64,000 nt of DNA, taken from assembly GCA_964199315.1 (NCBI GenBank), contig OZ116711.1, forward strand, positions 7,378,001 to 7,442,000. Direction: 5' to 3'. This stretch comes from Orbicella franksi (Eukaryota). Of the stretch, positions 2,451 to 51,000 are shown in pieces. Below the pieces are notes generated by a model, which saw only the letters and a list, made by a program, of their open reading frames with translations, was not told where the DNA came from and made no database searches. Positions within the stretch are counted from its first letter, which is position 1; each line of letters opens with the position of its first letter. The translations under genes were made by a program, and so were the position numbers.

Positions 2451-2936
2451 TCATTTCGGACGAGGAAAAGTACGCGCATGCCGTCCATAACCATCATAAG
2501 ACATTCTCCTGTGGATGTCATCATAATCATCACTGCGCTCATCATTAAAACCCAGGCTGGGTACCTTGTGCTGGCTTGGATCCCTGTACTGGCTAGGATC
2601 TTTCTCCTGTATGTGCCTGTAATCGTCTTCATTTAGAATTCGTTCCCGTGGCCACATATCCATCTGTACCTGGTGCCGAGGCTCTCTCATTCTCATTTTC
2701 TTAAGAGTGAAGTTAAGCTTAGCTGCTTTATCGGACAACACTGTACATGACTTGGTCTCTGGTTCAAATCCTTTGGCGGAAACCGTGATCTCATAGGACC
2801 CTGGGACTAGCAAACGCCAAAAGTCTCCGTCACGCGATGAAAATACGTCATGACGACGGTTTGCAACAGTAATCCTCGCTCCATCGATTGGTTGGTCGTC
2901 TTCATCCTTTATAAACCCGTTCACACCTGAGTGAAC
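2451..2936 (-). CDS. Carboxypeptidase paralog 1 exon 2 (transthyretin-like domain plus polar tail)
   Basis: Acceptor TTAG|GTTCAC; VHSGVNGFIKD...[12 protein letters not shown]...LNFTL; TGA at 2451. Confidence 0.9.
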   Translation of the reverse strand, partial: VHSGVNGFIKDEDDQPIDGARITVANRRHDVFSSRDGDFWRLLVPGSYEITVSAKGFEPETKSCTVLSDKAAKLNFTLKKMRMREPRHQVQMDMWPRERILNEDDYRHIQEKDPSQYRDPSQHKVPSLGFNDERSDDYDDIHRRMSYDGYGRHARTFPRPK

Positions 2937-4551
2937 CTAACAGAAGGAGAATAAACATTACTATGTCATCTGATTTGTACGTAACTTGACATGAAAATAG
3001 TACTAAATAACGTCGATTAAGCATGTTACCGAAAAACGTTATTCGTAGACAAGCTAGAAAAAGGTCGACAAATGTCGGCGTTTCGAAACAATCAGAAGCC
3101 CAGATATCGCTTAAAAACCCTGCCCTGAAGTTTCCCCTTTAAAACTCGCGCCAATCCCCTGCCTTTTGCTTATCACTGCGGACTGATGTAAACATAGGAG
3201 CGACATTTGGCGTTTGAAGGAAGCCTCTCTCAAATTCCTTTTTTTGGGTTTCTCATGTAATGCTTACTTCAAACTCACGATCCTGTAGGAGACATTATGA
3301 AATGAAATTTCTATCTTAAGACTTACACGCTTACCACTCCAGTATTGTTCAATTTACCTGCTCAATATACTTCAGAAGTGCCTCTTTGTTTTCCCTCCAA
3401 TACTCCGGTAACTCAGTCGCATTAGGAAACTTCTGGCAGCCAAGTTCAAGCGTTATATCAAAGCAGTTCGAGTGCACGTAGTTGTAATCTTGCATTCCCC
3501 CTGACACACTGAACCACTTGGCGCCATTTGTTATCCCGTCTATGAAATGCTCTCGGGGGATGTCTTTACATTTCCAAGGGGCATTTGCGAGGTGCATTGT
3601 GGGATGGGCTTCTGAATAAGAGCGCGCCAATTGTCTGAACACGTCATCATCCGGGGTAGCACTGTACACGCTCTGTCCCGAGGGATTATCATCATACGGG
3701 TAATTTGCCACAAGTGCTCCACTGTGCAAACTCGCTGACAGCACAAAGGGAATAGAATTGATCCATTTCATGACCGCCCGTGTTTCCGGTTGAGGTGCTC
3801 CGTTAGTGCTTGGGAAAAATTGATCCGGGAAATTACGATTCAAGTCGATCCCGTTCGCGTTAGATCGACTTGACTTCCACTCTTCGTCTGAAAAGGTGGC
3901 GGCCATTTCATATCCATCCGGATTCATGCTCGGCATAATATGTATCCTTGTCGTGTCTATGATGTTGGTAACCCTGGGATTAACACCGTAGTTTTTGCAC
4001 AGGTATTTTATCAGGTGAAGTAACATCTCCCGTCCTATCGCTTCATCCCCGTGCATATTAGCAACGTACTTAAACTCCGGTTCCCCCGGTTCGTGTTTCC
4101 CTGGGTTATTGGAAATTTCCATGACCCACAGTTTGCGGTTTTGTACCGAGATACCGATGTCATACAAGTGCGCTATTTTGCTGTACTTTCTTGAATAATC
4201 CTTCAGTAGCCATGTCATTTCTTCATAGTTATGATGTCTAAAGCTGATATTCTTCTCATGTATTTCTTCTTTGGCATCGTTTTCTAATTCCTTTGGAGTT
4301 GTTCCGGTGACTACTTGGTTATGCTCCTTGAAATCGTCTCTTGCAACGTCCAGTTTGTGCTTGATGTCTTTGACGCCTGCAAAAGGTTCTTTCTTGTTGT
4401 TTGAAGACTTAGTCCGGGCGGATTCGGTTTCATGTTTATTTTCTTTGGCAAAAGATATCTTTTTAGCTGCTTTGTCGGGTGGCTTTCCCAAGGCAGAAAG
4501 TACCAAGCCTTGTAGAACCAAACAAAGTGCTAGGAGCTTCAGATGAGGCAT
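2451..4551 (-). CDS. Gene model: secreted M14B metallocarboxypeptidase (CPD/CPE/CPM-like), paralog 1; 2 exons, 559 aa
   Basis: Signal peptide MPHLKLLALCLVLQGLVLSALG. Motifs [35 protein letters not shown] and ITLELGC, then a transthyretin-like domain. Exons 4551-3358 and 2936-2451, phase 0. Confidence 0.92.
3358..4551 (-). CDS. Carboxypeptidase paralog 1 exon 1 (signal peptide, charged extension, whole catalytic domain)
   Basis: ORF 3349-4617 with the ATG at 4551 preceding the hydrophobic signal; donor CAG|GTAAAT. Confidence 0.92.
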
Positions 4552-5564
4552 AATTGATGTGCTCCTTGTTCTGATATCCAGCTGAAATGTCTGACAGTTT
4601 CGGTGAACACTGATCAATTTAGAGTTTGTTCATCGCTTCTGACATCACTAAAGGAGTGGTTAATAGCCTACCACACCTTTAAACATTTTAGTTATGATCT
4701 TTACCTTGTGCATCGCATCACTTCTACGAACGGCTAACCATTAGTGAACGATCGTGGTCGTGTTCAGCAATAACAGTTGAACAATAATTTACTTATTTAC
4801 TTGAATTAACACTATATCGATATCAAACCAAAGTATAGCTTTGCAGCTTAGTAAAAATATATTTTATTGCTTTTCAAGGAGTGTTTTTGTATAGCAACGC
4901 GGAATAGAAGTCCATGATCTGTTAACTAAGAGATTTTAAGTGCATTGGTTAGCCGGCCACCTGTTTTGAAGCGACAGGTAACAAAGTTACCTGCTCAGCA
5001 CCTTTGAACGCCAAATTTTGTTGAATAATCGTTTTTAAACGTGGATTTGTAATTCTTAATTTTTCCTAAACGTTTCTTAAAAAGCGTTTCCAATGATTTG
5101 CGCATACAATAACTAATTTATTTATTTATTTATTTAGAGTAAACATTTGCGACTAAACCTGTTTGTTTGATTTGTTTGATGAAGTACTGTTCAAATAAGC
5201 GAAAATTATGTTAAGACCAGTTAAAGTTTATTCTTCAGTGGAAATACAATGCGGCAGAAATGTTTGAAAATACAAGTGCAGTCTCAGTTTCTGTTGCACC
5301 AGATCGAGGAGATGGTTGTTGTAAAATGCGTAAACACTATAAATTACTTCTACGGCAAATAATTGTTTATCGCTTAACCACACCCAGTGAAAGGATAACA
5401 GCTAAATAAAGCGACTGAAAAAAGTTTTATCGATGACTGTCAGTTTATGGACAAATGATCTAATTGTCATATTAGACGGATTAAATTTCACAGTGAAAGT
5501 TGTTTGACCGCTCGAGATTTTAGGCGAAATATTTTATTGTCTGGCCGGTCGAAGAAACGTTAAA
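4552..5564. promoter_or_regulatory. Putative bidirectional promoter between the two carboxypeptidase genes
   Basis: 1013 bp between divergent start codons; no transcription start site data. Confidence 0.5.
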
Positions 5565-6365
5565 ATGTATCGCTTCTCGACTTTTGTAGTGTGTGGCATA
5601 ATTTTAACTTCGCACTTTGCAAACAGCAATCCTTTAATTAAGAAAGTTTTAGACATGATTCACGGCGGGGACCAAAAAGAATCAACTCACGACGAAAAGA
5701 GGAAGAGCGTCGACATTTTGAATGTCAATGAATTCAAGCACCATGATTATGAAGAGATGACATGGTTTTTGAAGTACTTTGCGCAGAAGTACTCAGACAT
5801 TGCTAGGCTGTACTCCATCGGTTATAGCGTACAAAACCGGAAGTTATGGGTTATGGAGATCTCCGACAATCCTGGTAAACACGAAGCTGGCGAACCGGAA
5901 ATCAAGTACATCGGGAATATTCACGGCAACGAAGCATTGGGTCGAGAACTGTTACTACAACTAATAAAGTACCTTTGCGAAAGTTACGAAAATGACCCTA
6001 AGATTAAGACCCTTGTCGACACAACTGGCATTCATATACTGCCAAGCATGAATCCAGATGGGTACGAGATGGCAGCGGTTCGCGGCAAGGGAAACAAGCT
6101 AGTCGGAAAGAGAAATGCTTACAGGGTGGACTTAAATCGCAACTTTCCGGATCAGTTTTTTCCCAGCACTACAGGCCCACCCCAGTCTGAAGTCAGGGCC
6201 GTAATGGAGTGGATCAAAACGTACCCATTTGTGTTATCTGCGAGCCTGCATAGCGGAGCCTTGGTCGCGCTTTACCCTTATGATGATTCTCCCTCAGGAC
6301 AGAGCCTGTACAGCGCTACACCTGATGATGACGTTTTTAGACATTTGGCCAAGACATACTCACAG
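5565..6365 (+). CDS. Carboxypeptidase paralog 2 exon 1
   Basis: Signal peptide [21 protein letters not shown]; N-terminal catalytic part; donor CAG|GTGCCT, phase 0. Confidence 0.92.
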
Positions 6366-9300
6366 GTGCCTTGTTGTTACTTGTTATTTTGGTGATTACA
6401 ACAAGAAATGGAAAATTGAAGGACTTTTAGGGCTAAAGTTTTAGGGACTCGCACAAGACAATTAGAGTTGGGCCCCAAAACAGTCCCTTTATAATTACTC
6501 CTATAGGATATTGACTAGTTCAGACGATTCTGTTACGTATAAGGCTCTTGAAATTGAATGTCACTATTAGTTTGAAACGGTAAAACAACTTCTCACATGT
6601 AGTAAGAAAGAAAAATTGAAACTTGAACACGATTTCGAACAATTTGAATGTAAACCATTTTTAATACTTAAAAACAACTTCATATATTGGTTACCACTGG
6701 AAAATAACTTTCACTGTTATATTAATGTTCAGAATCGGAAATTTGTCGAAAATATTTTACTCTTGAAGTGGAAAAAGTTAGTGAGAAGTTTCTGGTATCC
6801 GCGCGCCATTTTGGATTTTATGACGTCACACCAGTGCCCCTTTTCTTTAGAAAGAAAAATATTTGAAGAACTTAGCTTTCTTAAAATCTGGAGATAGCCG
6901 AAGGCTTAAAGGAGCTTAGTCACAATATTTTGAGTCATTTTGACCATGTACAAAATTCCTTTAAATTAAAGGAAACCTGAAAACAAAAGTTAAAAAAGAT
7001 AGAAAAACACCAAAGAGATAATAATAAAACACAAAGGAACAAGGATGGTTAGGATGGAGAAGATTAACACGGATTACAAAAGACAAACTTGAAAAATTTA
7101 AGCGCAAACCGTGGCGTAGCTCCTTTAAATCAAAATTTCAAATTGGAATATACCATTTGCATAAAAATACAGCATGTTACACTAACGAACATTCATAAAA
7201 CTACCCCTTGGAAAAAATTAAATTTTCACGACTTCCTTCTTTCAAAAGTCTGATTCCTTATTTGTGTCCTAGGAACATCCCGTGATGCATTTGGCCAACC
7301 CCAAGTGGAATTGCACAGACCAAAAGGAAGAGCACTTTATAGACGGCATCACGAACGGTGCCAGCTGGTCCAGCCTGTCAGGAGGCATGCAGGATTATAA
7401 CTATGTTCACTCCAACTGCTTTGAAATCACGCTAGAGCTAGGCTGCGATAGATTTCCTAAAAGCAGCGACTTAGAGAAGTACTGGCTCGATAACAAAAAG
7501 GCTCTTGTCGAGTTTGCACAGCAGGTAGGAAGTTGCTCTTAATTCTATTTTTTATATCTCGAAAGCATATATAAGCCAGCACTCGCAATTAAAGGGATTG
7601 TATAGACAATGCTCGCAAGAATCAAAGAAACTCGATACTTAGAAACATGAGAAGCGAAAAGTCGACCAGGAAACTAGTAATATATCACGTGGCTATCTCC
7701 AAGAGCAGGCAAGATATGACTGGTCGACCGATCGGACAAGATGGAGCCCTCGTATAGCGCGAACATTGGAGGTGCGGGAGAGGGTTCATGCATGATGGCC
7801 AATTCCCTTTCTGAGATGCACCTGCAGGGAATCATGGTAGTTGTATTCATCATCTAGGACTGGATATTTATTTTGATGGACACAATTACCATGGTTCTCT
7901 GCAGGCACTTCTCAGAGAGGGAAATGGCTATTACCGAAAAGTGTTAATAGACCGTCAAAATATCAATTTGTTGCTTTTAATTACAATATATCAAGCATCT
8001 CGGTTATGATCAGTTCGTTCTTATGTCTGTGATCTATTTACTCAGCGCCCATGAATTTCTTTTGTGAAAAATGTTGAATTCAGGTCATTTAAATTGTGTC
8101 TTAGGTACATTATGGCGTGAGTGGATTTGTTAAAAACAACCAAGGTGAGCCTCTCTCTGACGCGACCATTAGCGTCGCAGATCGTCGTCATGACGTCACT
8201 ACGTCAAAGGAAGGAGACTACTGGCGCCTGCTAGTTCCAGGCTCCTATGAAATCACGGCCAGAGCAAAAGGCTACCAACCTAAGACACATTTGGTGGAGT
8301 TACGCGCTTCTGAAGGAAAAGTCCTAAATTTTACGCTAAAACCAACTCAGGAAGACGGAACAAAACTGTCACTTGTGGCAGGAGAAGATGAATTGTTAGA
8401 CCGTGTCATGGTAAGCTCAAAAAATGCCTGTATATTCCTCATTGATTCTTAACCCTTCCTTTCTTATAACATAATTAAGACCCCATTCAAACCGACTAAA
8501 CTAGTTTAACTAAATCAAGTTTAGGTTTTTTCATTTGTTGATTACGCTTTGCAGTCATTTTTAGAAGACAAATTTCATACCACCTTGCTAACATATTTTA
8601 ATCAAACATGTTTTTACCTGGTTAAGTTGTGTGGTGTGTGAACGGTACGAGCAACTAAGTTTTAACCTAGTTTAGTTAAACCACTTTTACTAGTAAACAT
8701 ATTTAAGAGAGACAGGGTTAATAATTAAAATTATTTTAAGGCCGGTCGAATATTTTATCAGATTGGGGGGGGGGGGGGGGGAGGGGGGAGGGAGAATCTA
8801 CAGGTCTTTTTGATATCATAAAGTAGGCTTATAAAGCACTTATCAACCAAGCTAACTTTGGTCGTATTTTATATCAACCCGGCCCTGACATTCGGAACAC
8901 TTCCTTTTGGAGGGAGTACTTTCGTTGGTGGATAGGCGTTGTTTCACTGAAGGTTACTGTGTGTATCACTTGTTACACAGACTGGAAGCTACATAACCGA
9001 TGAAACCAGAGATCCGAGGGAACATCTAATACAAATAAGTCATAATGACAGAGACGAACAGTCGTTTAAAAGACACATCCTACACCCTGGGCTCGACGAC
9101 AGGTATGCTAGCTTTTAAAATTCAGGAAATAAAAGGTTTTGATTGAGAAGGTAGGCTCGATTTATGCCACTCTGTCGAGTCCAGTTCATCCCAAAAAAGA
9201 GTTCGGTGGGGCGGTAAGGGGCGGGGGGAGGGGGGGGGGGAGGGGGAGTCCACACTAAACCGTCACGAAAACGGAGCTTTTTGAAAACGCTCTTCAAACC

Positions 9301-10446
9301 GGAGGAATTTGCAGGCGTCGGCTTTGCGTTTTAGTGTGGACGGAAAACGTTTCGAAAACGGAGCTTTTCGAAAACGATGACGTCCCGATAATCAGGTGAT
9401 TTCCCTGTCCTTCAGTTAGCTGTTTTTCAGTTAAGCTACGGAAATGTGGAAATAATTCCAAGGAGTGTCAAAAGCACAGTTGATGATTAAAACAAGGATT
9501 AATTAGTAAAATCGGTCTGTGATCCATATGAGGAGTCTCGAAAATGGACCAGAACAAGAAAGTTCAACACGAAATGGCAAGCTGGGTGTCCTTGATTACG
9601 TGATACCGAAAAAAAAAACCGTTTGGTTTGTGAATCGAAAACCATTGGGGAAATTTTTTGGGTGAAGGGGAGGTATCTTTCTGGGCCAGTGAAAATTTTA
9701 CCGGGCTAGTGAGTTCTGAGAGTCACTTGCCGAATGGCGAGTGCTGTGAAAATTTAGTTTTCAACTCTGTTATATTAACAGTCACGGTTCCCAGATGACC
9801 TTCCATACTTCATGTAACAATTTTTGTTTGATTTTCTGCTTGCTTGTATTTAAGGACCAGGTTGTCTCTCGAGAAAGAGCTACTTCACGAGGAAACTGCG
9901 AAGGGGAGTGGATCGATCGAGGAAAACAAAACAGACGATTCGTCAGGAGAAGGAGGAGGGAGTGGTGACGAGAACTCTTCACGTATCAAACAGGAACCGG
10001 ACAGACCTGTTATTATCCAGAAACCGGCTAAACTAGTCAAACCTGCCAGTGTTCAGACACCAGCTAAACTCAGCAGCAACAAAACTAATGCGAAACCTCT
10101 TAAACAGAACACTGTTCAAATTGAGAAGAAGCCGGCACCCGTGGAGGCGAAGAAAGATGTACCAATGAAAGTAGCCGTCACAGACAAGCGATTTTCCAAG
10201 CTAATTGGCTCGAACGTGGCGTGCCGTGTGGTTGGAAAGAAGGGCTTGAAGAATGGCAACCTAAGATGGGTGGGTCATTTACCTCTCTTGCCGTTAGATG
10301 ACGCGCATCTCATTGCCGGTGTGGAGTTGTTAACGGATGACAAACTGGGAACTGACGGTACATACCGTGGAGTGAGATACTTTAAGAGCTCACCGAAGCG
10401 TGGATATTTCTTCAGGCTGAAGGACTGTAAAGCTGTCAAGCATTAG
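5565..10446 (+). CDS. Gene model: secreted M14B carboxypeptidase paralog 2 with C-terminal CAP-Gly domain; 5 exons, 690 aa
   Basis: Exons 5565-6365, 7273-7524, 8105-8410, 8981-9102 and 9855-10446 total 2073 nt in frame. Motifs [22 protein letters not shown] and ITLELGC. Confidence 0.85.
6910..7124. mobile_element. Complete TTAA-flanked MITE (Kolobok/T2-like)
   Basis: TTAA|AGGAGCT ... AGCTCCT|TTAA, ~215 bp. Confidence 0.85.
7273..7524 (+). CDS. Carboxypeptidase paralog 2 exon 2
   Basis: TCCTAG|GAACAT; [12 protein letters not shown]...GGMQDYNY...ITLELGC; donor CAG|GTAGGA. Confidence 0.92.
8105..8410 (+). CDS. Carboxypeptidase paralog 2 exon 3 (transthyretin-like domain)
   Basis: TTAG|GTACAT; [10 protein letters not shown]...[12 protein letters not shown]; donor ATG|GTAAGC. 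Confidence 0.9.
8981..9102 (+). CDS. Carboxypeptidase paralog 2 exon 4 (linker)
   Basis: ACACAG|ACT...GACAG|GTATGC; open phase 0 to phase 2, bridging exons 3 and 5. Confidence 0.7.
9246..9415. mobile_element. Partial copy of the GTCCACAC/GAAAACG MITE family
   Basis: Matches the internal part of the full copy at 27904-28283. Confidence 0.75.
9855..10446 (+). CDS. Carboxypeptidase paralog 2 exon 5 (Ser-Gly/acidic and Lys/Pro-rich linker, CAP-Gly domain)
   Basis: TTTAAG|G, phase 2; GNLRWVG...IAGVELL...[12 protein letters not shown]...GYFFRLKDC is a CAP-Gly signature. Confidence 0.8.
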
Positions 10447-11489
10447 GGGTCGTTACACGACGCGGTAACTAGAACCTGTGACTACCCAAGAGCCACCTTA
10501 TGCTAGAATGTCAAAAATTAACTTAAACACAGTGACAAGCTGAGTCACGTACAGCTTAACTGAAAAATATGTAGCCAAACTTCGGAAGAGACTCGTTAGA
10601 GATGTAAAGCATATTTGTATATGAAAAATGGGCGATACAGATGCATATATCATATCATATATCAAAGATTTTCAATTTCTTTGGAAGGATGGTTTATTTT
10701 GAAGGTTCGATTTCCGCCTTACTCTCGTTTCCGGTCCCCAGGCGTCCTCCCCGAGAAGAGGAAGGAGCGGCGGCGTTTCTCTCCCTTATCACCCGTCTCA
10801 GTCTTCCTCAATTTTAGGTATTCTTTTGTCTTTCTGGTTTATTGTTATCTCCTTGGTGTTCTTATACATTTGTCGTTTTGCACGACTTCCTTCGATATGA
10901 TAACATAATATTACTGTTTATACCATGCCATAGAAAATACAGCCAATCAGAGTACAGGAAAGCCGTTGTACATTCGTCACTTGCATTTGTACACCGAGGA
11001 AAATGCAAGTGACTGGTGGGATATTCCACGGTATACCAGTAATATATATTATGACAAACCTCTCGATATCGTGTGTAAGAACTGAGTGAACGGTACGCGG
11101 CAAACAGAGCAGCTGATGCCAGCTACTGAATGACGATGACATGGCAAGAACTAATCCAGTAATTGTTTTCAAAGGCTATAGATCATTTAGGGCTTAACTT
11201 TGCAGCGTTTGTAGCTTTTATTCATCTACGTTACCAATTAACGTGAAGAAAACATGGCGGCGAGCGTATCATGTAAACCTATAGCTAAGACCAAACATTT
11301 CGTATTCGAACAAGTAGAGGAAATATTAAACATTAAGTTTAAATTATGTTTTTCAATAAAAGAAGTTCAATATATTATCCGGTTCAGTTGACCGCCATCC
11401 TGAGTGGACTCGACTTTTGGCCCCTTACAGCCCCTTCCCCGTCTCGCCACCCGTGAACCGTGAATACAATGTGACTGCACTTACCTGGC

Positions 11490-14050: not shown

Positions 14051-17000
14051 CTGAAATAAAGAGCAACATGCAATCAATGCTTGTAAAACAATAAACTCGA
14101 CTAATTTTCACATTGGAAAAATTGGAATTGCGTCCAGAAAATAAAGCCTCTGGAACCATTTGGAAGTTTCTTTCGAAATTTCCAACGATGGCTCTGTCAA
14201 TTTTCAAGGGAGTCCCCCAAGGGGACAAGGTACAAAGAGGACACTTTCTTCGCAAGTTCATGGGAAAGATTATGGGTTTAATGCTGTACAAGGTGGTTAA
14301 AACTTTCGATGATGTCTAAGTAAATGTGTGACCATTCATATGAAAGCAATTGAATTATACTTTCATGTAATTTGGTTCTAGCTTTGAAGTCTGCGAATGA
14401 AACACTAGTGTGTGACCATTCAAATGAAAGCTATTGAGAAGTACTTTTATGTGGTATTGTTTATTATGCTGTACAAGGTGGTTCTAACTTTGAAGTCTGT
14501 GAATGAAACACTAGTGTGTGACCATTCAAATGAAAGCTATTGAGAAGTACTTTTATGTGGTATTGTTTATTATGCTGTACAAGGTGGGTCTAACTTTGAA
14601 GTCTGTGAATGAAACCCTAGTGTGTGACCATTCAAATGAAAGCTATTGAGAAGTACTTACATGTGGTACTATGCTCTACATGTTGGTTCTATTAAGTCTG
14701 CATATGAATCTCAAGTGTGTGGCCATTGAAATGAAAGCTATCGAGGAGTACTTGCAAGTGGCGGTACTGCTTATTATGCTGTAAAACGTCTAACTTTTGA
14801 GATCGTCGAGCATGAAACCCTAGCGTGTGATTCCTTGTGTGAAAGCTATTGAGTAGCACTTACAGGTTTCAATACGTTACAAAACAGAAGTCTCGAGCTT
14901 TTGTTTTTTCTTTGATCTGATGAAATTCAAACTTACCAAGGTTGTCAAATGGGAGACCAAGATGCTTCTTTATCGTGGGTGTTTGAGCCTCTGAGCTCAG
15001 CGATTCGCATGAAGTCTGATCACTGCATACGCTAAAATCTGCGCTAAACCGTGTATCATCAGCTAATGAACAAGCAGATTTAGTTCTTCTCAGAGACGAG
15101 CCCTTATTGGTCGGTCTCTGGACCTCGGGAGTGTGTGAAACGGTTCTTTTCAGAGTCTCTTTGACGGGCACACATTCGCGTGACCAGTTAAGAGCGCCAG
15201 CCGAACGCAGTCCATTGATGCGTGGTACCCGTAAAGCCTTTGGCGTCGGCTTCGCAGAATTCACCGTGACTTCAGAGCCGCGGACGCTCGGGTCTCGAGA
15301 TTGCCTGACAGTGATTGCGTGAGACCTGAGACTTGGTGACCTGGACGCAGAACCATATGACATTCCAGCAGAAAGTTCGTCCATAGATTCGTTGACTTCT
15401 ACTGCCTGGCTTCCGCTCAGCTCATAGACGCTTGGTTCAATCGATACAGTAGGCATCTGCGGTCGGTCGTCTTCGTAAACGATGTTGCTATGGTAATGAC
15501 AATTATTCGTGCCACCTTTTTCCCGAACCACATCCGGGACACTACTCACTTTACGTAACGGCATTTGAAGCACCTGAAATAACACAGAAAAGTGATTATG
15601 TTAGAAGTGTGATGGCCATCTAATAATGCTTCCATTGAGTTCAGCCTCAAAATACCTAAAAATACTTGAAATGTGAAAATACTCAAATCGCTACTGACCC
15701 TTTGAGGTTAGATCGAAACACTTGCAAAGACGAGCCCAAAGTGTTGGAGTGAACAGAAAAGATAGTAGTGACCCTAATTAGCCTTTTATATGAGGTTATT
15801 CTAAGGCGGGGGTTAACATAAAGGCCGTATTTTTGCTGGGTATTATGGTTTGAATGCAAATATCTCGTTCACGTTCCAAGCAGGGAAAAATCTCCCTGCT
15901 CATTTCACGTAGCTACGTTTTGGGCTGTTTTGTAAATTTTTTGGGGATTTTTGGGTATATTTGGGGATAAATAGTTTTTCTCAAAGGATTAGTAAAATTT
16001 ATCGAAATATGAAATTTTGAAGATTTGATGCTGTTTTAAAATTAGAATTTGAAGTTAGAAATTGGTAGACGTACATCAAACAGTTTCCCACCAATCCGGG
16101 GAGCCCTTTTGGGGGCAATCAACTGTCTGGTGGTGTTCCAAACCCCTTTTCTTCCTTTTAATCCCTCTTTAAACTTCCTAAAATTTCACTTAAATTCATG
16201 TTTACCCCCGCCTTGAGCGATCTATTGCATGGCCGAAAAACATCTAGATAACAAAATAAAATACATCATACAAAAGGTTAATAGTTTGCTACCAGGGTAA
16301 CACAAGCTAGACGCGAGGAGAGCGCACAGGAAATGTGTGTGCGGGGATAAAACTTACTCCTACGCGCGCCCAAATCTCGCGTGACCTATGCTACGAAAAG
16401 AACTTCTGGGACGATATCAGCAAACTAACAACAGAAACCCTGACAAAGAGGGACTCACTTGAGAAAGAGCGGTGTTGCTCCTGGCCCTCATAGCATCAAG
16501 CTGTACCCTGCTGGCTGATGACAACCGCCTGCGGTCGTAGGAGTCCGTGAACAGCGACTTCGACTTCTTGAGACTGCGTAGATTACATGTCAACAGAGCC
16601 CACCAACACTCACGGACTTTCTTCTGGATCACGCAATAAAACACGAAGATTGCAAAGCCTTGAAGGCTGTTGAAGATAGCGAAGAGATACTGGAACACGA
16701 GACGAGCTTCACTTATGGCAAAGAAACCAAACATCCACGTGATGCCGACCAGAATGAGAATTCCAAACGCTCTTTTGATTTTAAGCAGCCCTTCGGAGCC
16801 ACGTTCTGGGTCAGCGGCGTTTGGCGGGCGCGTCGCCAGTTTGTACATGATTAACGAGAACGTGACCGTGTTAATGAGAATAACAAGCAAAACAGGCGCC
16901 ATGAACGCCGCAAAGAACGCTATGTCTCCAAGACGACAACTGAAAAAAATGATACCAAAACGTGTTAATTCACGTTACTAAACACTGTAGCTATTCACTA

Positions 17001-20000
17001 TGTGCGAGCGTCGCTGTCTTAAAGTAGGCTCATGAAGTTAAGCAAGAATGCAGTCTTTTCTAGCAAAACTAATAGCGCACCATAATATATTTTCAAGTGC
17101 AATTTGGACAAAATAAGCGAATTTTTTTCATTAACTTCTAAGAAAAAATTGTGCTTCTGAAACCTGTGGTACTAAACTGCTCATTCATTTCAATTGCACG
17201 ATTAAAAACAATTTAGTAATCACTACAGCTACAAAGGTAAAGAGCAATAATTATCCTGGAAACCTTTCTAAGACCCTAATACTCGGGTTCTACTAAATTT
17301 ATTTTAGCGAACGTCGGTAAAGTCCAGAATTCCCGATAGCGTTAAAATACAGCTTCAAACATTTCTTTTAAAAAAGATTCCTTTAAATAGCGGGGTACAC
17401 CAGGTTTAGGTTCTTCTGATTACACTTACTAGTGTTTTCCACCATAACTACTTTTATCCACAGCAAGAGTGACAATTACAACGATGAAAGGCATACCTGA
17501 GTAAAAAAACAAGAAAAAGAAACTGTTATTTCAGAAGCCTCTACTCAATGAAGTGATAAAGGAGCTACCCACGGTTTGTGCATCTTCAAAAGTTTAGCCT
17601 AAATTTTTTAAGTTCGTCGTTTGTAATCAGTGTTAATCTTCTCCATACTTAACCATCCTTGTTCTTCTATGGGTTATTATTTTCTCTTTCAGTTGGTGTT
17701 TTTCTACCTTAGTAAACTACTATTTTCAGGTTTCCTCCAATAAAGGTAATTTTGTACGTGGACGAAATACCAGCAATACGTGACTGAGCTCCTTTAAGTT
17801 AAGATAGTTCTCGAATGACCAGCAGCAGTCACTGTCGATGCCAGTTACTACAGAGTGTTGTAAAAGTTAAACCAACAACAAAGTAATCACTCTGGCCAAT
17901 CACAGAGGACTCAGACAATCAAGTTGACCAATCAAAAATCGAAGGAAATACATGTAGCCGACAAAAAGCGCGGGAAAATGTCTGAGTCTAAGTGACGGAT
18001 GGTTTTGGTTGGTTGATTAAGTGGCGTGAGTTTTTTCAAACCAATCACCACTCGTAGTGAAAAGCAATCTAAAATGTTGCTCATACCAACTATATCGATG
18101 ACATGTACAAAAGACTCACCCCAACCCATTGCGGCACACTTCCACATGACGTAATCACCATAATCTCTGAACACTTTAACAAATGCTTGGTACATGAAGT
18201 AAGCCTCGATCAACATCCACAAAAACGCGACCAGTAGGAAATAATGAATGAGCGCTGCCACGATTCGGCATGCGTTCTCAGACACCCCACCCCTCTCCAC
18301 CCCTGCGACAAACACAATCAGCACACACAGAAGCGAGGCACACAGGTGTAACAGAATCTTGGCTGCAATCTGATCCTTTCGAAGCTTTCTGTGGTTATAT
18401 AAAAGAAAACAAACCACTATTAGAGCCAAATACAAACAAATGTCTATGAACATGTGAGGTTAGTGTAGTATATATTTGTTCTTTGATAAATATGACTTTG
18501 GATTGCCACGAAAATGGATATGTGAGGAAAAGTGAAAACTCTCTTTCAATCAGATGACTTCGGAACAGGCTTCAGTTTTCACGCTTCTATTCAATAATAC
18601 ATTTAAATGGAATTAGAATTAGAATACTTTGGTTTTTAGTTAAATCAGCCTTAACTGCCTACATTGCAACATAATAGAATTAGAACCCCTTGAATAAAAT
18701 AGTAAACAGCTCCGCAACAGCTTTCATTTGAATGGCCCCACACTAAGGTTTCATCTACAGACTTATACGTTAGAACCAACTAGTTCCGGATAATAAAGAG
18801 TTCCAGATGAAAGTGCTGTTCAATAGCTTTCGTTTGAATGGTCACACGCTTGGTTTTTATACACAGACTAAAGTTGGAACCAACTTGTACACCATAATTA
18901 GCAATACCACATGAACTGCTCAATAGCTTTTGTTTGAGTGATCACACGTAGGTTTCAAACACAGACTCAAATATCAGCCCAGCTCAAGGTTTAAATCTGA
19001 AATTGAAAAGGGTTAAAGAGAGCCTTACTTGAAAAATCCAAAAGTGAAAATGGTCAGCGTTAGTCCCAAAATAGACAGTGCGCAGCCTATGTAGCTAATG
19101 AGTGACAACACCATGGAATGTTTACCACACGCCTTGGTTGAAGGACCATCGACATCCTGTAAACAAGAACAGAAGCCGCTATGTTAGAGATTATTTAATT
19201 ATGTTTAAAGGAGCTCAGTCACGGTGTCTTGCGTTGTTTTGGCCCCGTACAAAATCTCCTTCAGTTGGACGGAAACCTGAAAATGGTAGTTTACTAATAT
19301 AAAATAGAAAATCACCAAAGAGATAATGACAAACCATTTAGGAACAAGGATTGTCAAGGATGGCGAGGATTGAAACGGATTACAAGCGACGAACTTGAAA
19401 GATTTAGCACAGACATTACTTAGCTCCTTTAAGAGCTGTAGCTGAATCCAAACAGGAATTCAAGAGAAAACGAGGACGTTCAATGGACCAAGACCTAAAA
19501 ACTTGGGTTCAAATTGAATTATCAGCCAAAGCGTTTTGCTTCTAGCGTTTGCTTTGACTGTCCTTCTTCTTTCAGGATCGCAATGAGTGAAGGAACCTTC
19601 AACATTCCCTATGCCTCAAAAGGCGTGTCTGTGCGAGCGAGGGGTTGGGTGGGTGAGGGAAGTTACGTCACAGTAAGTTAACTAGTGAATACTCACCACT
19701 AAAGCTGCAAAGTTGGTCATGTGATCACACTCGCAAATAATCGTGTCATTAACTATGCCGCGAAGAGAACAACCAGCCTTGGACCATCCATCTGGATTTA
19801 AAAAACAATACAAAATGCACAAATATCAGATTAGCTTGTAAAGGAGTGCTGTAACGAGGAGTGTTTTATCAAGAGACTCGGGGAGATTATGAGATCATAG
19901 TCTCTTAGTTTTACGAAAAAGATTTTTCTCGCAAAGTATGACCTTGAATAAACCAGAACATCTTCAAACTTAAAGCCAAACCGATCTCTGGATACGACAA

Positions 20001-23000
20001 AAAGAAGCAACAGAATGATCGCACTTACTCTTTTCGAAATCCCACCACACACATCTTGTGCTGTTTTCGATGATCTGTTTAGCAAAGGAACACACAAGTT
20101 ACTAAGGTGCTCTAGCAGAGTTTTTTTTTAAAAAAAGCAATAGGTCTTACCGTCGAGTAAATCATTAAACGCACGATGTCACGTAAAGTCACGCTATGTT
20201 ACACTACGTTACGTCGTAAGAAGGACGTTTCGTAATTCGTCCCAATTTCTTTTATTAATTTTTCATTTAACGCTTTAATGTTAGTTCTAGTGCATTTGCA
20301 TTGCCGCCCGTACGCTTTCCCGCCAAGATGACCCCGGTTCACACGCGCGTATTCTCACAACAATTACCATGGTTTTCCCGCCAAAATGACCCTGGTTCAC
20401 TCGTGCGTATTTACCACGTTTGCCGCCAAAATGACCAGGGTTTACATGCGTGTACACTGACAATGGCTTCCAGGTTTCTCCCGCCAAAATGACAGCAGTC
20501 GTTCTCACCCTTTGTAACTCACCTGGTCACGAGGCATTTGGAACTTGATAATAATGGGCGAGGAGAGGTTTGCCACGTGTCTTTTCCTCAAACTTGCAGC
20601 GAGCACTGGACTGCTCTCTGTGACAACATCACCACTGGAGTTTTCCATTGTATAACGCGAAGAAGGAGGCGACCGTTCCACTTTGGAGACCTTTTCTGTA
20701 GTAAAGCTATCCTCACAGACCTCAGTTCTGCGATATTCCGGCGCAAAAAGAACGCTTGTGCGATAGTAAACAACAATTAACGTAGTGTTATCGGTGGAGT
20801 TTAGAACCGACCTGGGTATTGTCACACTTGCTTCGTCTTCGCCGCTTGTGGAATTCACGGTCGCGTTAATAGCGATTTTGTCCTTGCTCGTTTGAACAGT
20901 CAGATGAATACCCCTGAAAGAGTCTTTAACTAACTCTCTGTGAACAGCAATGTTCGAGGTACTTTTGCTGAACTCTCCACCTTTCTCGATATAATCGTCA
21001 AGAATCTTGACAAATCTGGAAGGGGACAACAAAGAAATTTTTAATTGTTTTTTTAGGTATTGAAAATAGCAACATTTAAAACCTCTGCTTGATATCTTTC
21101 ATTTGAATGGTCACACACTAGGGTTTCCAGACTTAAAATTTGGAACCACCTTGCACAGCATAATAAACAGAACCACATAAAAGGAATACTCAATACGGCT
21201 TTCATTTCAACAGTCGCACACTAGGGTTTCAGACTTAAAAGTTATAACCACCTTGTATATCATAATAAACAGCACCACATGAAAGTACTGCTCAATAGCT
21301 TTCATTTGAATGGTCATGGATGTTAGCATCACAACACGTTCCCACTTCTTCAATTCTCGGGCATGATTTGTTGATATAAAAACGCTTTTAAATACTTACT
21401 TAGCGGATGTGTTGTACTGTTTTTGCGTTTTCTGCAGGACATCAGTCTTAGCGTCCATCACGTGACTAATGGTGTCTAACACGTGATCACCAACATCAGA
21501 TGACGTGGTGTTTGTCTTGACCACCTTGTGAAGAATGTGTGCTGTAATGGAGATATCCTTCTCTTGCAGTTCCGAAGATTTCGATGTAATATTTTTTACT
21601 TCTTTCATAACTTTAAGTGCATTGGTATCCGTTACTGGGACCTAGGAAAGATGAACAACAAGGGCGATTTATTGTGTTTATTTTACTTTTGTAAAGGTCT
21701 TAGAACAGATCTGGACAGGCGCTATACAAATATCTATTATCATCATTATCATCATCATCATTATCATTATCATTATCATTATTAATTACATCAGTTGCGT
21801 GACAGGTTTTTGTCCTTGTCATGCAATCTTTAGCCGGACGAAAACTGCGTGACGTGCACAAAGGAGGTCTAAATTGCTTTCATTTAATCGGTAAATATTC
21901 TTTCGCTTACCCTGTTGAGTTTCTCCAAAGCACGCGTTATTTCCGATCCTTGGTTAGTTTCCTCTGGAAAAGAAAAAAAAAAGATCACAATACTATTCAT
22001 CAAAAGCTCTGCAAAGAGTAAAAAAAACCATATGTCTACAGACCAATCCAAAACCACTCTACTAAGCCCCTCTTTTCCAAAAATAACGCAATTTTGTAAC
22101 AGCCTTAAAGCTTCAATGTAACATTTGCAATAAAGATTAACATAAAACAAACAAAACTTGATCAAACTGGCTTTGGAGTTAATACATTGAGAATCGTCTG
22201 TGTCAAGGCCAATTTCATTAACTCTTACGTTTGCACACAGCAAGCATAAGGAAAATTCTTCCCCACCCAAAAGGACCTACAGAGCTTTATTAATATAGCT
22301 ATGTCACGTTTTGCGCATCTTAAAAAATTTCGCCTAAATATTTCAAGTTCGTCGTTTGTAATCCGTATTAATCTTCTCCATCCTTTATCATCCTTGTTTC
22401 TTTATGGTCTATTATTATCTCTTTGGTGATTTTCTATCTTAGTAAACTCAGATTTTCAGGTTTCCTTCAATTTAAAGTTAATTTTGTACGTGGCCAAAAT
22501 AACTCAAAATACCGTGACTGAGCTCCTTTATGGAGCATCACCAATAGAGCATACAAGTTTTAGTAGACTCGGGTCTTTACCGTGCTTTAGAAGAGATCTT
22601 AAAGCAAAGAGCAGGAAGTCTAACGTTTTTATCGAATACAGTGTTTACTAGGAAAAAACGACGCAATTTTTCCTAACCTAAGAGGTATTTATTTGAGAGA
22701 AGACGTTTTCAATAAAACATTGAAATGTAGTTAGTCTCAATACCTGATAAATAAGTGAGATTGTTGCTGTAGGGCCCAGGCCCCACTCTTGTGTAAGCCC
22801 TCACACCTACGTAATACTGTTGATTAGTTTCCAGGCCACTAATGTCCTTTGACAGCGTCTTCTCCTCATTCACGTACGTTTCCATCTCGCCATTTGGTTT
22901 GTACAACACGACCTCGTATTTGGTGATTTTTCCATTGCTGTCCTTGGCACTAGGGATGGACCATGACACTCTGATGGTGTTTTTACCACGCGGTATTATG

Positions 23001-48000: not shown

Positions 48001-51000
48001 TCATTCGTAGTTCTTTTCAGTATTTCTTAACCTTAATTACCCTCATATTTCTTCGTGATTAATGATTGTTACGTTTTTATACTTTTCTAGCTCAGTTTAC
48101 TAAAGATTCGAGGCTTATTTTGTTATAAAGTTAATGGTGTTTTATTCCATTGTACAGACTGTAATCTTGCCTTGGGAATGGTCACGGGCGACATCCGGGA
48201 CTCTCAGATTACTGCCTCGTCTTCTAACTCGGTGTGGACGCAGCCTTTTGCCGGCAGACTCTGGAACAAAAGGTGAGCGGGAACCAGTGTGATGTTTAGT
48301 ACAGCACGCAATGTTTGTGAATTCCTTGGTTGGATTTTAATAAGATCTCCATGTTTCTTTTGCTTCAAAAAACCCAAAGCATTTTAACCGAAAAATTGCG
48401 TATTTTTTGTTGAATTCACCAACAAATACCTCGCAAGATGAAAGTCCAACTTACCACGTTAAAGCATTGCATGCTTAATAGTTTTCATTTTAGCGGTCAC
48501 ACACTAGCTAGGATTTTATTTACAGGCGAGACTTAAAAGTTTGAATCACCTTTCACAGCAAAATAAACATTACAACATCAAATTATTGCACACTTGGGTT
48601 TCGTGCACAAAAGTTGTAGCTCAATGTAAAGTACTGCTCAATGGCATTCATTGGAATGGTCACACACTAGGGTTTCATCAACAAACGTTAAAGTTAGGTT
48701 AAAACCACCTTGTACAGGAGAATATACAGCACCACATGAAAATACTGCACAACAGCTTTCATTTGAACGGTCACACACTAGGGTTTCATCCACAGACTTC
48801 ATAGTTAGAACCACTTTTTACAGCAGAATAAACAATACCACATGAAAGTACTGCACAATAGCTTTCATTTAAATGGTCACACACTAGGGTTTCACCTACA
48901 AACTTAAAATTAGAACCACGTTACAGAGTATGTGATAGTACTTCGTGAAAGTACTACTCAATAGCTTTCCTTTGAAAGGTCACACACTCGGCTTTCATCC
49001 ACCTTATTAATAGATAAGCATACACTTTCACGGAATTTTGATTTGTTTTGGCCACGTATAAAATTACCTTTAAATTGAAGCAAACTTGAAAATAATAGTT
49101 TACTAAGATAAAAAAACACCCAAAGAAAAGAAACAAGGATGGTTAAGGGTGGAGAAGATTAACACGGATTCCAAACGACGAACTTCAACAATTTATCAGG
49201 CTAAACTTTTCAAGATGTCCAAACCGTGACGTAGCTTCTTTAAGTACTTTAAATGCCATCATAGGATAGAGCATTTTACAACTGAGTGTCGTAAAACCAA
49301 AACCAAAGCAATTACTCCAGCAAATCACAAAGGACGCAGACAATTCAGTGAACCAATCAAAAACTCAAAGTAATTACATGTAGCTGACGCAAAGCGCGAG
49401 AAAACGAGTGCGAGTGAGCTTGGTTTTACTTCTGATTGGACGAAAAAGTGGCGCGAGTTTTTTAAGCCAATCGTGTAGCGTAGTTGGTGCAAAATCAGTT
49501 ACTTTTCGACACTCAAATGAAAACCGCTCTAATGTTAAATTAATTAACCCCGCGATGTTGTTTCTTTCGCTTTGAAAGATGAACAAACTTACTAACTGGT
49601 TCTTCGTGTTTTCCCGGTGTAGACGTATTCAGCACCAGACCTTTGGTGGTTGGTGTGCGATGGACTGGGACGATAATCCATACTTGCAGATTGATTTCGG
49701 CCAAGAAACAGTGATAACAGGCGTGGCCACGCAGGGCTTAGACTATCCACTGGGGAACTGGGTCAAAAAGTATTCGTTAAACTACAGTTGTGACGGCGGA
49801 GTGAGCTGGAAAACATATCAAACTTTTGACAAACACACGGTAAATATCCATATTCAGACAGCATTGCCTCTAAGAACAACAACAGCAACAGTAGCATAAA
49901 AAGAAAATCATTCAAGAATTGAAGAAAACAGAAACATGTGGAAATACTTTTGAACCCGAAATATGCATCACAGTTATTCAAGGTGGGAGCAATGGAAAAA
50001 ACAAACAAGAAAACAAAAACTAAAACAAAAGCCAAACTGGTTCTCTAAGTTGTAAACCTACAGTGTTAGAAGGAATCTGAGTCCACTAATTTACGCCCTT
50101 GTTTAAAATTGTTTTAAACATTGCAACAATGTCAACAAAACAGAAGATACAGGCAATATCATGTGAAAATGAATTGAGTGGTCAGAGCCCAGTCTGTCAT
50201 AATCTGAGAGACTCCAGCTTCTATAGGAGACGAGAGACCATTTCAGACATGTAACAAATTTCTAACGACATGCTGAATTTTTCGTAGGCACTGAAGGGAA
50301 ACAGCGATGACAATTCCGTCGTGACAAACAAGCTAGATGAGGCTATCATAGCACAAGTGATAAGAATCAGAGCATTGGAATGGAATGCACACGGCACCGC
50401 GTGCATGAGAGTAGAAGTTTATGGATGTAGCACGAAAGGTAAATTCAGATGAGTCCATAACTAGGAGATATCGCATCTCTGACTCTGAGTCTCTGCTAAT
50501 CACATTCATGAGTGGGTTATTTAAAAAAAAAAAAAACAGTTTCACTGAAAGAATTTAAAAAACAAAATACAATTCTATCTTAATTTTTGTTTGATGAGCT
50601 CAACGATTGGTTGAAAGAACGCATGCAAAGTGCCCTTACCAATCCTGGTGAGTTTGATCAACCAATCAGGATGGATCAATGTTTAAACTAGCCATGACTA
50701 GGCTGACGTGCGTTTTCCCGCGTTTGGGACGGGTTGTATGTTGTCCTGCCTTTAACCTGTTTTATTTCCCCGCGACAGACAAAGCTTGCATGTTTCCTCG
50801 CACTTGGCAAGGATACCATGTTTTTCCTCGCTTAGTGCGGGCCGCATGTTTTCCTGCCTTTGATACTTGTTAGATTTTTTTACGCGCCTGTAATTAATGC
50901 CTGCGTGCGCATGTTTCCTTGCACTTGGCACGGGTGGCATGTTTTCCTGCGCTTGACACTGGTGTTGCAAAAGCGCCTCGAGTTCTGATTGGTTTATTTG

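Follow-up and report, generated by a model that had tools for sequence, protein, structure and literature searches.

Gene model and transcript evidence

The window analysed here, a 64,000-nt stretch of the Orbicella franksi genome (contig OZ116711.1, positions 7,378,001 to 7,442,000, forward strand), carries a gene that fuses an M14B carboxypeptidase to a C-terminal CAP-Gly domain behind a signal-like N-terminus. Five plus-strand exons, spliced in frame, give an open reading frame (ORF) of 2073 nt that has one terminal stop and encodes 690 amino acids (aa). An earlier note, made from the DNA letters, had proposed this fusion and quoted a peptide from it; its exon coordinates, the peptide and the 690-aa length all proved correct. 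GT..AG borders were found at all four introns, with pyrimidine-rich acceptors. The features of the gene, numbered by position in the window, are as follows.

5518..5564, plus strand: 5' untranslated region (UTR); RNA contigs start at 5518 (run X1) and 5538 (run X2)
5565..6365, plus strand: exon 1, with the start codon, a signal-like segment at about aa 1-21 and the first two thirds of the M14 domain (H120/E123/H229, N191-R192, D240)
7273..7524, plus strand: exon 2, with the end of the M14 domain including the catalytic Glu, and the conserved N280-C-T sequon
8105..8410, plus strand: exon 3, with the transthyretin-like (TTR) CarboxypepD_reg domain and the conserved N426-F-T sequon
8981..9102, plus strand: exon 4, 122 nt of linker, ending in phase 2
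9855..10446, plus strand: exon 5, the terminal coding exon, with an acidic linker, a Lys-rich basic linker, the CAP-Gly and the stop codon
10222..10425, plus strand: CAP_GLY Pfam match, aa 617-684; C617 at 10222-10224, LGTDG (for GKNDG) at 10345-10359
10426..10428, plus strand: codon of C685, the second invariant Cys, five residues from the C-terminus
10447..11200, plus strand: 3' UTR, extending at least to 11200; RNA-contig depth is the same as in the coding sequence, and a genome-wide repeat lies at ~10816-11012

The transcript was checked with the contigs of four RNA runs, aligned over 5300-11200. In X1, a single 2074-nt contig comprises 5877-6363, 7271-7522, 8103-8409, exon 4 and 9853-10752, with all predicted junctions GT..AG, and in X2 a 1524-nt contig from 5538 joins exons 1-4. 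The junctions 6365/7273, 7524/8105 and 8410/8981 are present in RNA contigs of two runs, and 9102/9855, the spliced joint of exons 4 and 5, is present in X1. Both junctions that the earlier note had put forward for an RNA check (8410/8981 and 9102/9855) were thus found, as was the in-frame splicing through exons 4-5 that it had proposed. Furthermore, the 690-aa proteins encoded by metatranscriptome contigs of 2332-2396 nt match the model at 99.7-99.9% identity. The gene itself extends over 4.9 kb, so contigs of this length must be spliced mRNA, and they hold the signal-like N-terminus and the CAP-Gly within one ORF. The fusion is real: it is one gene and one mRNA. We also considered, and ruled out, that an exon with a transmembrane (TM) segment lies hidden after the TTR domain and ahead of the CAP-Gly, since the RNA contig runs directly through exons 3, 4 and 5 and the orthologs have no second hydrophobic segment.

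The gene is already annotated in RefSeq under a generic name, with CAP_GLY among its precomputed Pfam hits. The NCBI model, P0109 ("carboxypeptidase D-like [Orbicella faveolata]"), is 99.86% identical to ours and one residue apart. At position 9986, the window has T (Ile538), and the RNA contigs of two runs and the NCBI O. faveolata protein have C (Thr); as this is the sole amino-acid difference from the RefSeq model, it represents an allele or a sister-species difference. Further single-nucleotide differences from the RNA runs occur at 5996, 8365, 9067, 10008, 10133 and 10335.

RNA-contig depth reached 100 to 2000 times the exon level at 6876-7269, 7664-7860, 9240-9436 and 10816-11012 (for example, ~16,500 at 6876-7072 and ~19,800 at 9240-9436), with many loose ends there. 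These intronic and 3'-UTR stretches are presumably high-copy transcribed repeats or transposon fragments, one of which lies within the 3' UTR. G-rich runs (G12-16, A-interrupted) are located at 8766-8795 in intron 3 and 9215-9250 in intron 4; the read alignment skipped 8756-8797 as repeat.

The carboxypeptidase core

Peptidase_M14 (Pfam) matched exon 1 with an expectation value (E) of 8.5e-60 (203 bits) and exon 2 with E 3.5e-12 (47 bits), against a cut-off of 21.6, and the transthyretin-like CarboxypepD_reg (PF13620) matched exon 3 with E 6e-19. Residues 56-431 align end to end with duck CPD domain II (1H8L; E 4e-140), followed by CPN, CPM and CPD, in agreement with the M14B enzyme that the earlier note had recognised. 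Compared with duck CPD-II, the zinc ligands H120/E123/H229, N191-R192, Y309 and E322 (in ELGC) are retained, as are the HGNE and NRNF motifs, and these catalytic and substrate residues are invariant or at least 90% conserved among 13 orthologs. D240, in YPYDD, aligns with YPFDD of 1H8L and is invariant in the same 13; we take it to be the equivalent of CPD-II Asp192, the S1' residue that sets Arg/Lys specificity. With the zinc ligands, the catalytic Glu, the substrate residues and D240 all kept, the protein is predicted to be an active enzyme that removes C-terminal Arg or Lys. By sequence, its type is M14B, CPD/CPE/CPN-like.

The CAP-Gly domain

The CAP_GLY profile (PF01302) matched at 45.1 bits, well over its gathering score of 26.5, with an E of 9.6e-12 that lies far outside what chance would give. 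The match takes in positions 3-64 of the 65-position profile and the last 68 residues (123-190) of the exon 5 translation. An AlphaFold2 model of the domain, built with 39 family representatives, had a predicted local distance difference test score (pLDDT) of 84 and a predicted template modelling score (pTM) of 0.72. When this model was compared with the PDB by Foldseek, the top matches were CYLD CAP-Gly3 (7OWC_B at 1.4 Å over 79 columns), and every one of the best 45 matches was a CAP-Gly structure. Against the sequences of solved CAP-Gly structures, CYLD CAP-Gly3 scored E 7e-8 and all others 7e-3 or worse. The Pfam match and the predicted fold thus confirm the CAP-Gly identity that had been read from the letters, and the sequence and structure comparisons uphold the proposal of the earlier note that the third CAP-Gly of CYLD is closest to it. 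A domain tree, with few columns and a biased sample, separated the family plus CYLD3-type domains from CYLD1, CYLD2, CLIP-type and multi-repeat domains with a Shimodaira-Hasegawa-like approximate likelihood ratio (SH-aLRT) support of 93. By core motif, C-terminal K-x-C and overall affinity, the domain is, as far as sequence and model go, of the CYLD CAP-Gly3 subtype. The protein as a whole is not a CYLD, having one C-terminal CAP-Gly on an M14B enzyme rather than three CAP-Gly domains and a USP domain.

The GKNDG motif, which the earlier note had reported as lacking, is indeed replaced by LGTDG, with the consensus (L/M/F)(G/A)(T/S)(D/N)G over the 39 representatives. C617 and C685 are invariant (39/39 cluster representatives), and the protein always ends 1-9 residues past the second of them. 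The first Cys stands for the V/I of the CYLD 'VEV' strand and is family-specific, and the second is common to CYLD; in the AlphaFold2 model, both are located in strands. Judging from this conservation and strand position, a C617-C685 disulfide probably staples the domain and would have been acquired for life outside the cytosol. The domain is basic family-wide, with a median isoelectric point (pI) of 9.75 and a net charge of +6, and the conserved LGTDGTFxGKRYF/GYF surface together with this positive charge suggests a peptide or polyanionic ligand.

CYLD CAP-Gly3 binds NEMO and ubiquitin, and for ubiquitin it depends on Leu475 and on the helical C-terminal extension that contains Phe545 (PMC8511506). 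In the family, the residue aligned to the M/L of CYLD 'GS(M/L)VEV' (the Leu475 position) is N, S, R, H, K or I. A CYLD3-like binding of ubiquitin was ruled out, the Leu475 equivalent being mostly polar or basic and the C-terminal extension being absent.

The search with exon 5 also brought up multi-repeat CAP-Gly proteins (P0004, P0007, P0011, P0014, P0017 and P0020), with 6-20 tandem repeats each and up to 2604 aa. They have GxDG motifs (GHDG, GNDG) in place of GKNDG and do not carry the family Cys pair; they surfaced because many repeats add up in score.

N-terminus, topology and linker

Hydropathy was computed on the Kyte-Doolittle (KD) scale in 19-residue windows. In the Orbicella model, the maximum of 1.31 falls in the N-terminal segment, and no later window exceeds 1.1. 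A short hydrophobic N-terminal segment opens all eight complete orthologs, and no later hydrophobic window above KD 1.2, hence no TM segment, was found in any full-length ortholog examined (Hydra, Hydractinia, Aurelia, the last named from its EukProt label, Sanderia, Dendronephthya, and other corals and hydrozoans). The absence of a TM segment between the signal-like segment and the CAP-Gly, which the earlier note had claimed, thus holds for the model and its orthologs alike.

The sequons N280-C-T and N426-F-T are conserved among orthologs. A full-length AlphaFold2 model (13 sequences) had a mean pLDDT of 53.8, with residues 434-602 below 50 and the CAP-Gly at ~70-80; it is informative only for the disorder of the linker and for the confidence of the CAP-Gly. 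The linker, ~170 residues long, has an acidic part (pI 4.7) followed by a Lys-rich part (pI 10.2). An acidic SGxG motif recurs in the linkers of scleractinians and medusozoans, in the latter as GSGSG(L/M)DE, and the linkers of some members are Pro/Thr-rich and mucin-like (P0006, P0010) or rich in N-x-S/T sequons. A weak Pfam match to the glycosaminoglycan-attachment region of glypican (E 0.34) was set aside as evidence and only prompted the SGxG observation. The N-terminal, sequon and linker features fit a protein of the secretory route, in which the signal peptide would be cleaved and the sequons and linker glycosylated.

Distribution and the head-to-head paralog

An exhaustive HMMER search with exon 5 returned 95 proteins, of which ~40 were family-type, mostly terminal-exon ORFs; P0041 and P0051 carry M14/TTR and CAP-Gly together. 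A search seeded with P0041, plus a cluster look-up, found PF00246, PF13620 and PF01302 in one protein in nine named cnidarians, so that the combination of Peptidase_M14 and CAP_GLY, for which a search of other proteomes had been suggested, recurs with the same architecture.

Hydrozoan/scyphozoan carriers: Hydra vulgaris, Hydractinia symbiolongicarpus, Aurelia, Sanderia malayensis
Coral/myxozoan carriers: Dendronephthya gigantea, Oculina patagonica, Orbicella faveolata, Myxobolus squamalis, Henneguya salminicola

The taxa covered are Scleractinia, Octocorallia, Hydrozoa, Scyphozoa and Myxozoa. Non-cnidarian M14B matches in the P0041-seeded list (fish CPZ, hagfish CPE, mammalian CPD fragments and Trichoplax) have no CAP-Gly. 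No named non-cnidarian carrier was found, with ~30 representatives bearing no taxon label and two region-restricted word searches reaching close relatives only, and the ESM Atlas showed no large M14 plus CAP_GLY cluster. At a locus of another genome (L002), the M14, TTR and CAP-Gly ORFs lie in the same order and orientation. In a FastTree phylogeny of M14 plus TTR (midpoint root), all 18 CAP-Gly-bearing sequences fall into one clade with support 98, which also holds three CAP-Gly-less rows, one annotated partial and two possibly truncated. This distribution fits a single acquisition of the CAP-Gly in the cnidarian stem. Two hydrozoan-type sequences nested in the clade, P0102 and P0103 (580 and 670 aa), gave no CAP-Gly match and may be truncated contigs or isoforms that lack the terminal exon.

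Full-text literature searches found no paper treating an M14 plus CAP-Gly protein. The earlier note had considered the architecture undescribed; this stands for the literature searched, but not for the databases, in which the gene model already appears as 'carboxypeptidase D-like' with a CAP_GLY hit.

A paralog lies ~950 bp upstream on the minus strand, head to head with the CAP-Gly gene (2451-4617), and opens with the signal-like MPHLKLLALCLVLQGLVLSALG.

3349-4617, minus strand: paralog M14 domain, complete in a single exon
2451-2924, minus strand: paralog TTR (CarboxypepD_reg) exon with an acidic, Tyr-rich tail and no CAP-Gly

The paralog shares 64% identity with the CAP-Gly gene over the core; in the tree, its sister group is the CAP-Gly clade (support 97). 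L002 has the same divergent M14 neighbour, and the two genes possibly share a bidirectional promoter.

A putative lumenal carboxypeptidase with an exported CAP-Gly

We consider it probable, though well short of certain, that the gene encodes a soluble M14B carboxypeptidase of the secretory pathway, lumenal or secreted, whose exported CAP-Gly serves for binding or targeting, and that this design originated in the cnidarian stem. Given the signal-like N-terminus and the lack of a membrane span, the CAP-Gly is expected within the lumen of secretory organelles or in the extracellular space. In this scheme, the protein would enter the endoplasmic reticulum and act in the lumen of secretory organelles or extracellularly, where the enzyme would trim the Arg/Lys left by convertases. 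The CAP-Gly, on a flexible and probably glycosylated linker, would dock the enzyme on a partner (protein or polyanion); a second, family-specific Cys would permit a disulfide, as an adaptation to a lumenal or extracellular compartment; and the design would have arisen once, in the cnidarian stem lineage. What we infer in this scheme is that the signal peptide is cleaved, that the protein is lumenal, that a disulfide forms and that the CAP-Gly serves in binding or targeting.

Several observations weigh against this interpretation. Junction 9102/9855 was present in one run only (X1), the X2 contigs breaking there, and raw reads of run X23 gave no coverage of the gene. The h-region of the Orbicella N-terminus is just moderately hydrophobic (KD 1.31). 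CYLD, a cytosolic protein, keeps the second Cys unpaired. The docking role of the CAP-Gly is putative. Every characterised CAP-Gly is cytosolic, so that a lumenal one would be without precedent (PMC8511506 for CYLD CAP-Gly3).

With regard to the site of action, 'carboxypeptidase D(-like)' is listed in the nematocyst or venom proteomes of Chironex, Chrysaora and Velella, but these lists do not say which carboxypeptidase D-like paralog is meant, which is a further point against the interpretation; an Acropora proteome paper lists serine carboxypeptidases only. The proteome listings and the retention in Myxozoa make the cnidocyst a candidate site, and such a site would explain both why the gene was retained in the gene-poor Myxozoa and why 'carboxypeptidase D-like' appears in nematocyst and venom proteomes. 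A more specific scenario, in which the CAP-Gly moved once to the secretory lumen in the cnidarian ancestor, gained a new disulfide and became a basic dock that holds a CPD-type enzyme on an acidic matrix or on the C-terminal tails of cargo, possibly in the cnidocyst, is put forward tentatively and may well not hold as a whole.

Alternatively, use of an internal promoter, initiation at another site or poor function of the signal peptide could yield a signal-less cytosolic product, in which the CAP-Gly would act in the cytosol as such domains normally do; the secreted full-length form would then be only one of two products. CAP-Gly domains are otherwise cytosolic (PMC8511506), X2 contains a 243-nt contig of depth 4.4 (9618-9858) that runs from intron 4 into exon 5 (exon depth ~38-47), X1 has coverage over 9634-9830 in intron 4, and an in-frame Met598 stands just upstream of the CAP-Gly. 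However, with roughly one tenth of the exon depth, the intron-4 contig also fits unspliced pre-mRNA, or else a repeat (X1 reaches depth 65 at 9741), an out-of-frame ATG at 9795 precedes exon 5, and Met598 is unconserved, being Val in P0111, the nearest coral ortholog. Furthermore, the signal-like segment starts all full-length proteins derived from transcripts, and a secretory route would suit both the additional Cys peculiar to the family and the linkers of glycosylation type. Between the exported CAP-Gly and the signal-less isoform, which the earlier note had left as alternatives, the sequence evidence leans to export, and we regard the cytosolic product as unlikely.

A further possibility is that, in the secretory pathway, furin or a prohormone convertase cuts off the linker and CAP-Gly as a pro-region or sorting region, the mature enzyme and the CAP-Gly fragment then acting apart. 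The linker motif 'KR-x-(K)I-x-x-P' is present in all medusozoan members and several others (EKRAKISRP, SKRTKISRP, PKRSGIPKP), and a C-terminal Lys-Arg exposed in this way would be trimmed by the enzyme itself. The dibasic site is, however, absent in the Orbicella protein, and P0111 has only KQ there; we regard such putative processing as quite unlikely. Even so, a convertase-cut variant would still need a lumenal CAP-Gly, and it would refine the proposal of an exported CAP-Gly rather than replace it.

An artefact of annotation or assembly, in which adjacent carboxypeptidase and small CAP-Gly genes were joined by read-through or in a chimeric contig, was rejected as extremely improbable: most database relatives of exon 5 are indeed stand-alone ORFs of ~200 aa, and junction 9102/9855 comes from a single run, but these ORFs start within the intron polypyrimidine tract (P0001: MFLLSLRSRISLE) and are thus terminal-exon calls of prokaryote-style gene finders, GT..AG spliced joints connect exons 3-4-5, full-length single-ORF transcripts exist in several species, the exon order M14, TTR, CAP-Gly recurs in L002, and the architecture is common to nine named cnidarian proteins. 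Rejected with equal firmness was prenylation of the C-terminal Cys as part of a CaaX box, by which the C-terminus would be cytosolic and lipid-anchored: although the second Cys is exactly fourth from the end in 21 of the 39 representatives (CSPV, CNPI, CHPI, CTPM), this spacing is lost in corals (CKAVKH) and myxozoans, the a2 position is mostly Pro, which makes a poor prenyltransferase substrate, the Cys lies within a strand of the folded domain in the model, and C-x-(P/K)-D stands here also in CYLD orthologs, whose chain goes on after the domain, so that the pattern is probably structural.

Significance

CAP-Gly domains are cytosolic readers of microtubule-associated C-terminal tails, and M14B enzymes remove C-terminal basic residues in the lumen. 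If the two are indeed fused behind a signal peptide and conserved in this form throughout the phylum, the fusion would provide the first CAP-Gly that works outside the cytosol, as well as a new accessory module for the regulatory carboxypeptidases. Among the sequences compared, CAP-Gly is an accessory domain not described for M14B, and it would be the first of its kind to follow a secretory signal. It offers a handle on how a cnidarian peptide-processing enzyme is placed in secretory granules or cnidocysts, and on which non-tubulin ligands a CYLD3-type CAP-Gly groove can read. The gene is already public under a generic name; what is gained is not a new gene but an architecture to be recognised and tested.

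Other features of the window

Downstream of the carboxypeptidase, two minus-strand ORFs match 7tm_2, the secretin family of G protein-coupled receptors, and probably belong, as exons, to a single adhesion- or secretin-type receptor gene. The remaining features are repeats, and the three short arrays with a ~102-106-bp unit are probably one dispersed repeat family.

16417-16902, minus strand: ORF matching 7tm_2, E 9e-15
17932-18453, minus strand: ORF matching 7tm_2, E 4e-16
1-1157: 190-bp satellite, 6.1 copies, 86% matches, at the left window end beyond the 3' side of the paralog
14373-14668, 21092-21307 and 48628-49002: short tandem arrays with a ~102-106-bp unit, in both orientations
58416-59066: 28-bp minisatellite, 23.5 copies, 77% matches, with long spurious ORFs in several frames (58343-59130)

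Comparison with known systems

In its enzymatic part, the coral protein resembles CPD domain II (duck gp180; 1H8L/1QMU), CPN, CPM and CPE, with which it has in common the catalytic and transthyretin-like domains, the catalytic and specificity residues and a signal-like N-terminus. Bilaterian CPD has three catalytic domains, whereas the coral enzyme has one and possesses neither a TM segment nor a cytoplasmic tail. Beyond the M14B core, it adds the disordered linker of ~170 aa and the CAP-Gly, a module found in none of the M14B clusters retrieved from the Atlas.

The same logic, a CPD-like core with a non-catalytic module by which the enzyme is positioned at a ligand, matrix or membrane of the secretory or extracellular space, is seen in CPZ (Frizzled cysteine-rich domain) and in CPX1/CPX2/AEBP1 (discoidin), and Fz and F5_F8_type_C modules are present in other M14B clusters of the Atlas. 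CPE, an M14B enzyme with a C-terminal membrane-binding helix, is likewise parallel. In contrast to these, the coral module is a CAP-Gly and stands C-terminally on a long disordered linker.

The best match of the CAP-Gly in both sequence and structure is CYLD CAP-Gly3 (1IXD, 7OWC, 7OWD), at 33-35% identity. Both domains do without GKNDG, and they have GxxRWxG, AG(V/L)EL, TDGT(F/Y)xGxRYF and the C-terminal K-x-C in common. The CYLD domain is cytosolic and internal, whereas the coral domain is terminal and lies behind a signal-like N-terminus; the coral domain also has the added invariant Cys at the 'VEV' valine, is polar or basic where CYLD has Leu475, and does not have the extension. The CAP-Gly domains of CLIP-170, p150Glued and TBCB share the fold, with template modelling scores of 0.55-0.65 and root-mean-square deviations of 2-3 Å, but in sequence they reach E of only ~1e-2. 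They use GKNDG, by which canonical CAP-Gly domains bind, in the cytosol, tubulin, EB1 and CLIP-170 through their EEY/F-COOH tails, whereas the coral domain has LGTDG in its place.

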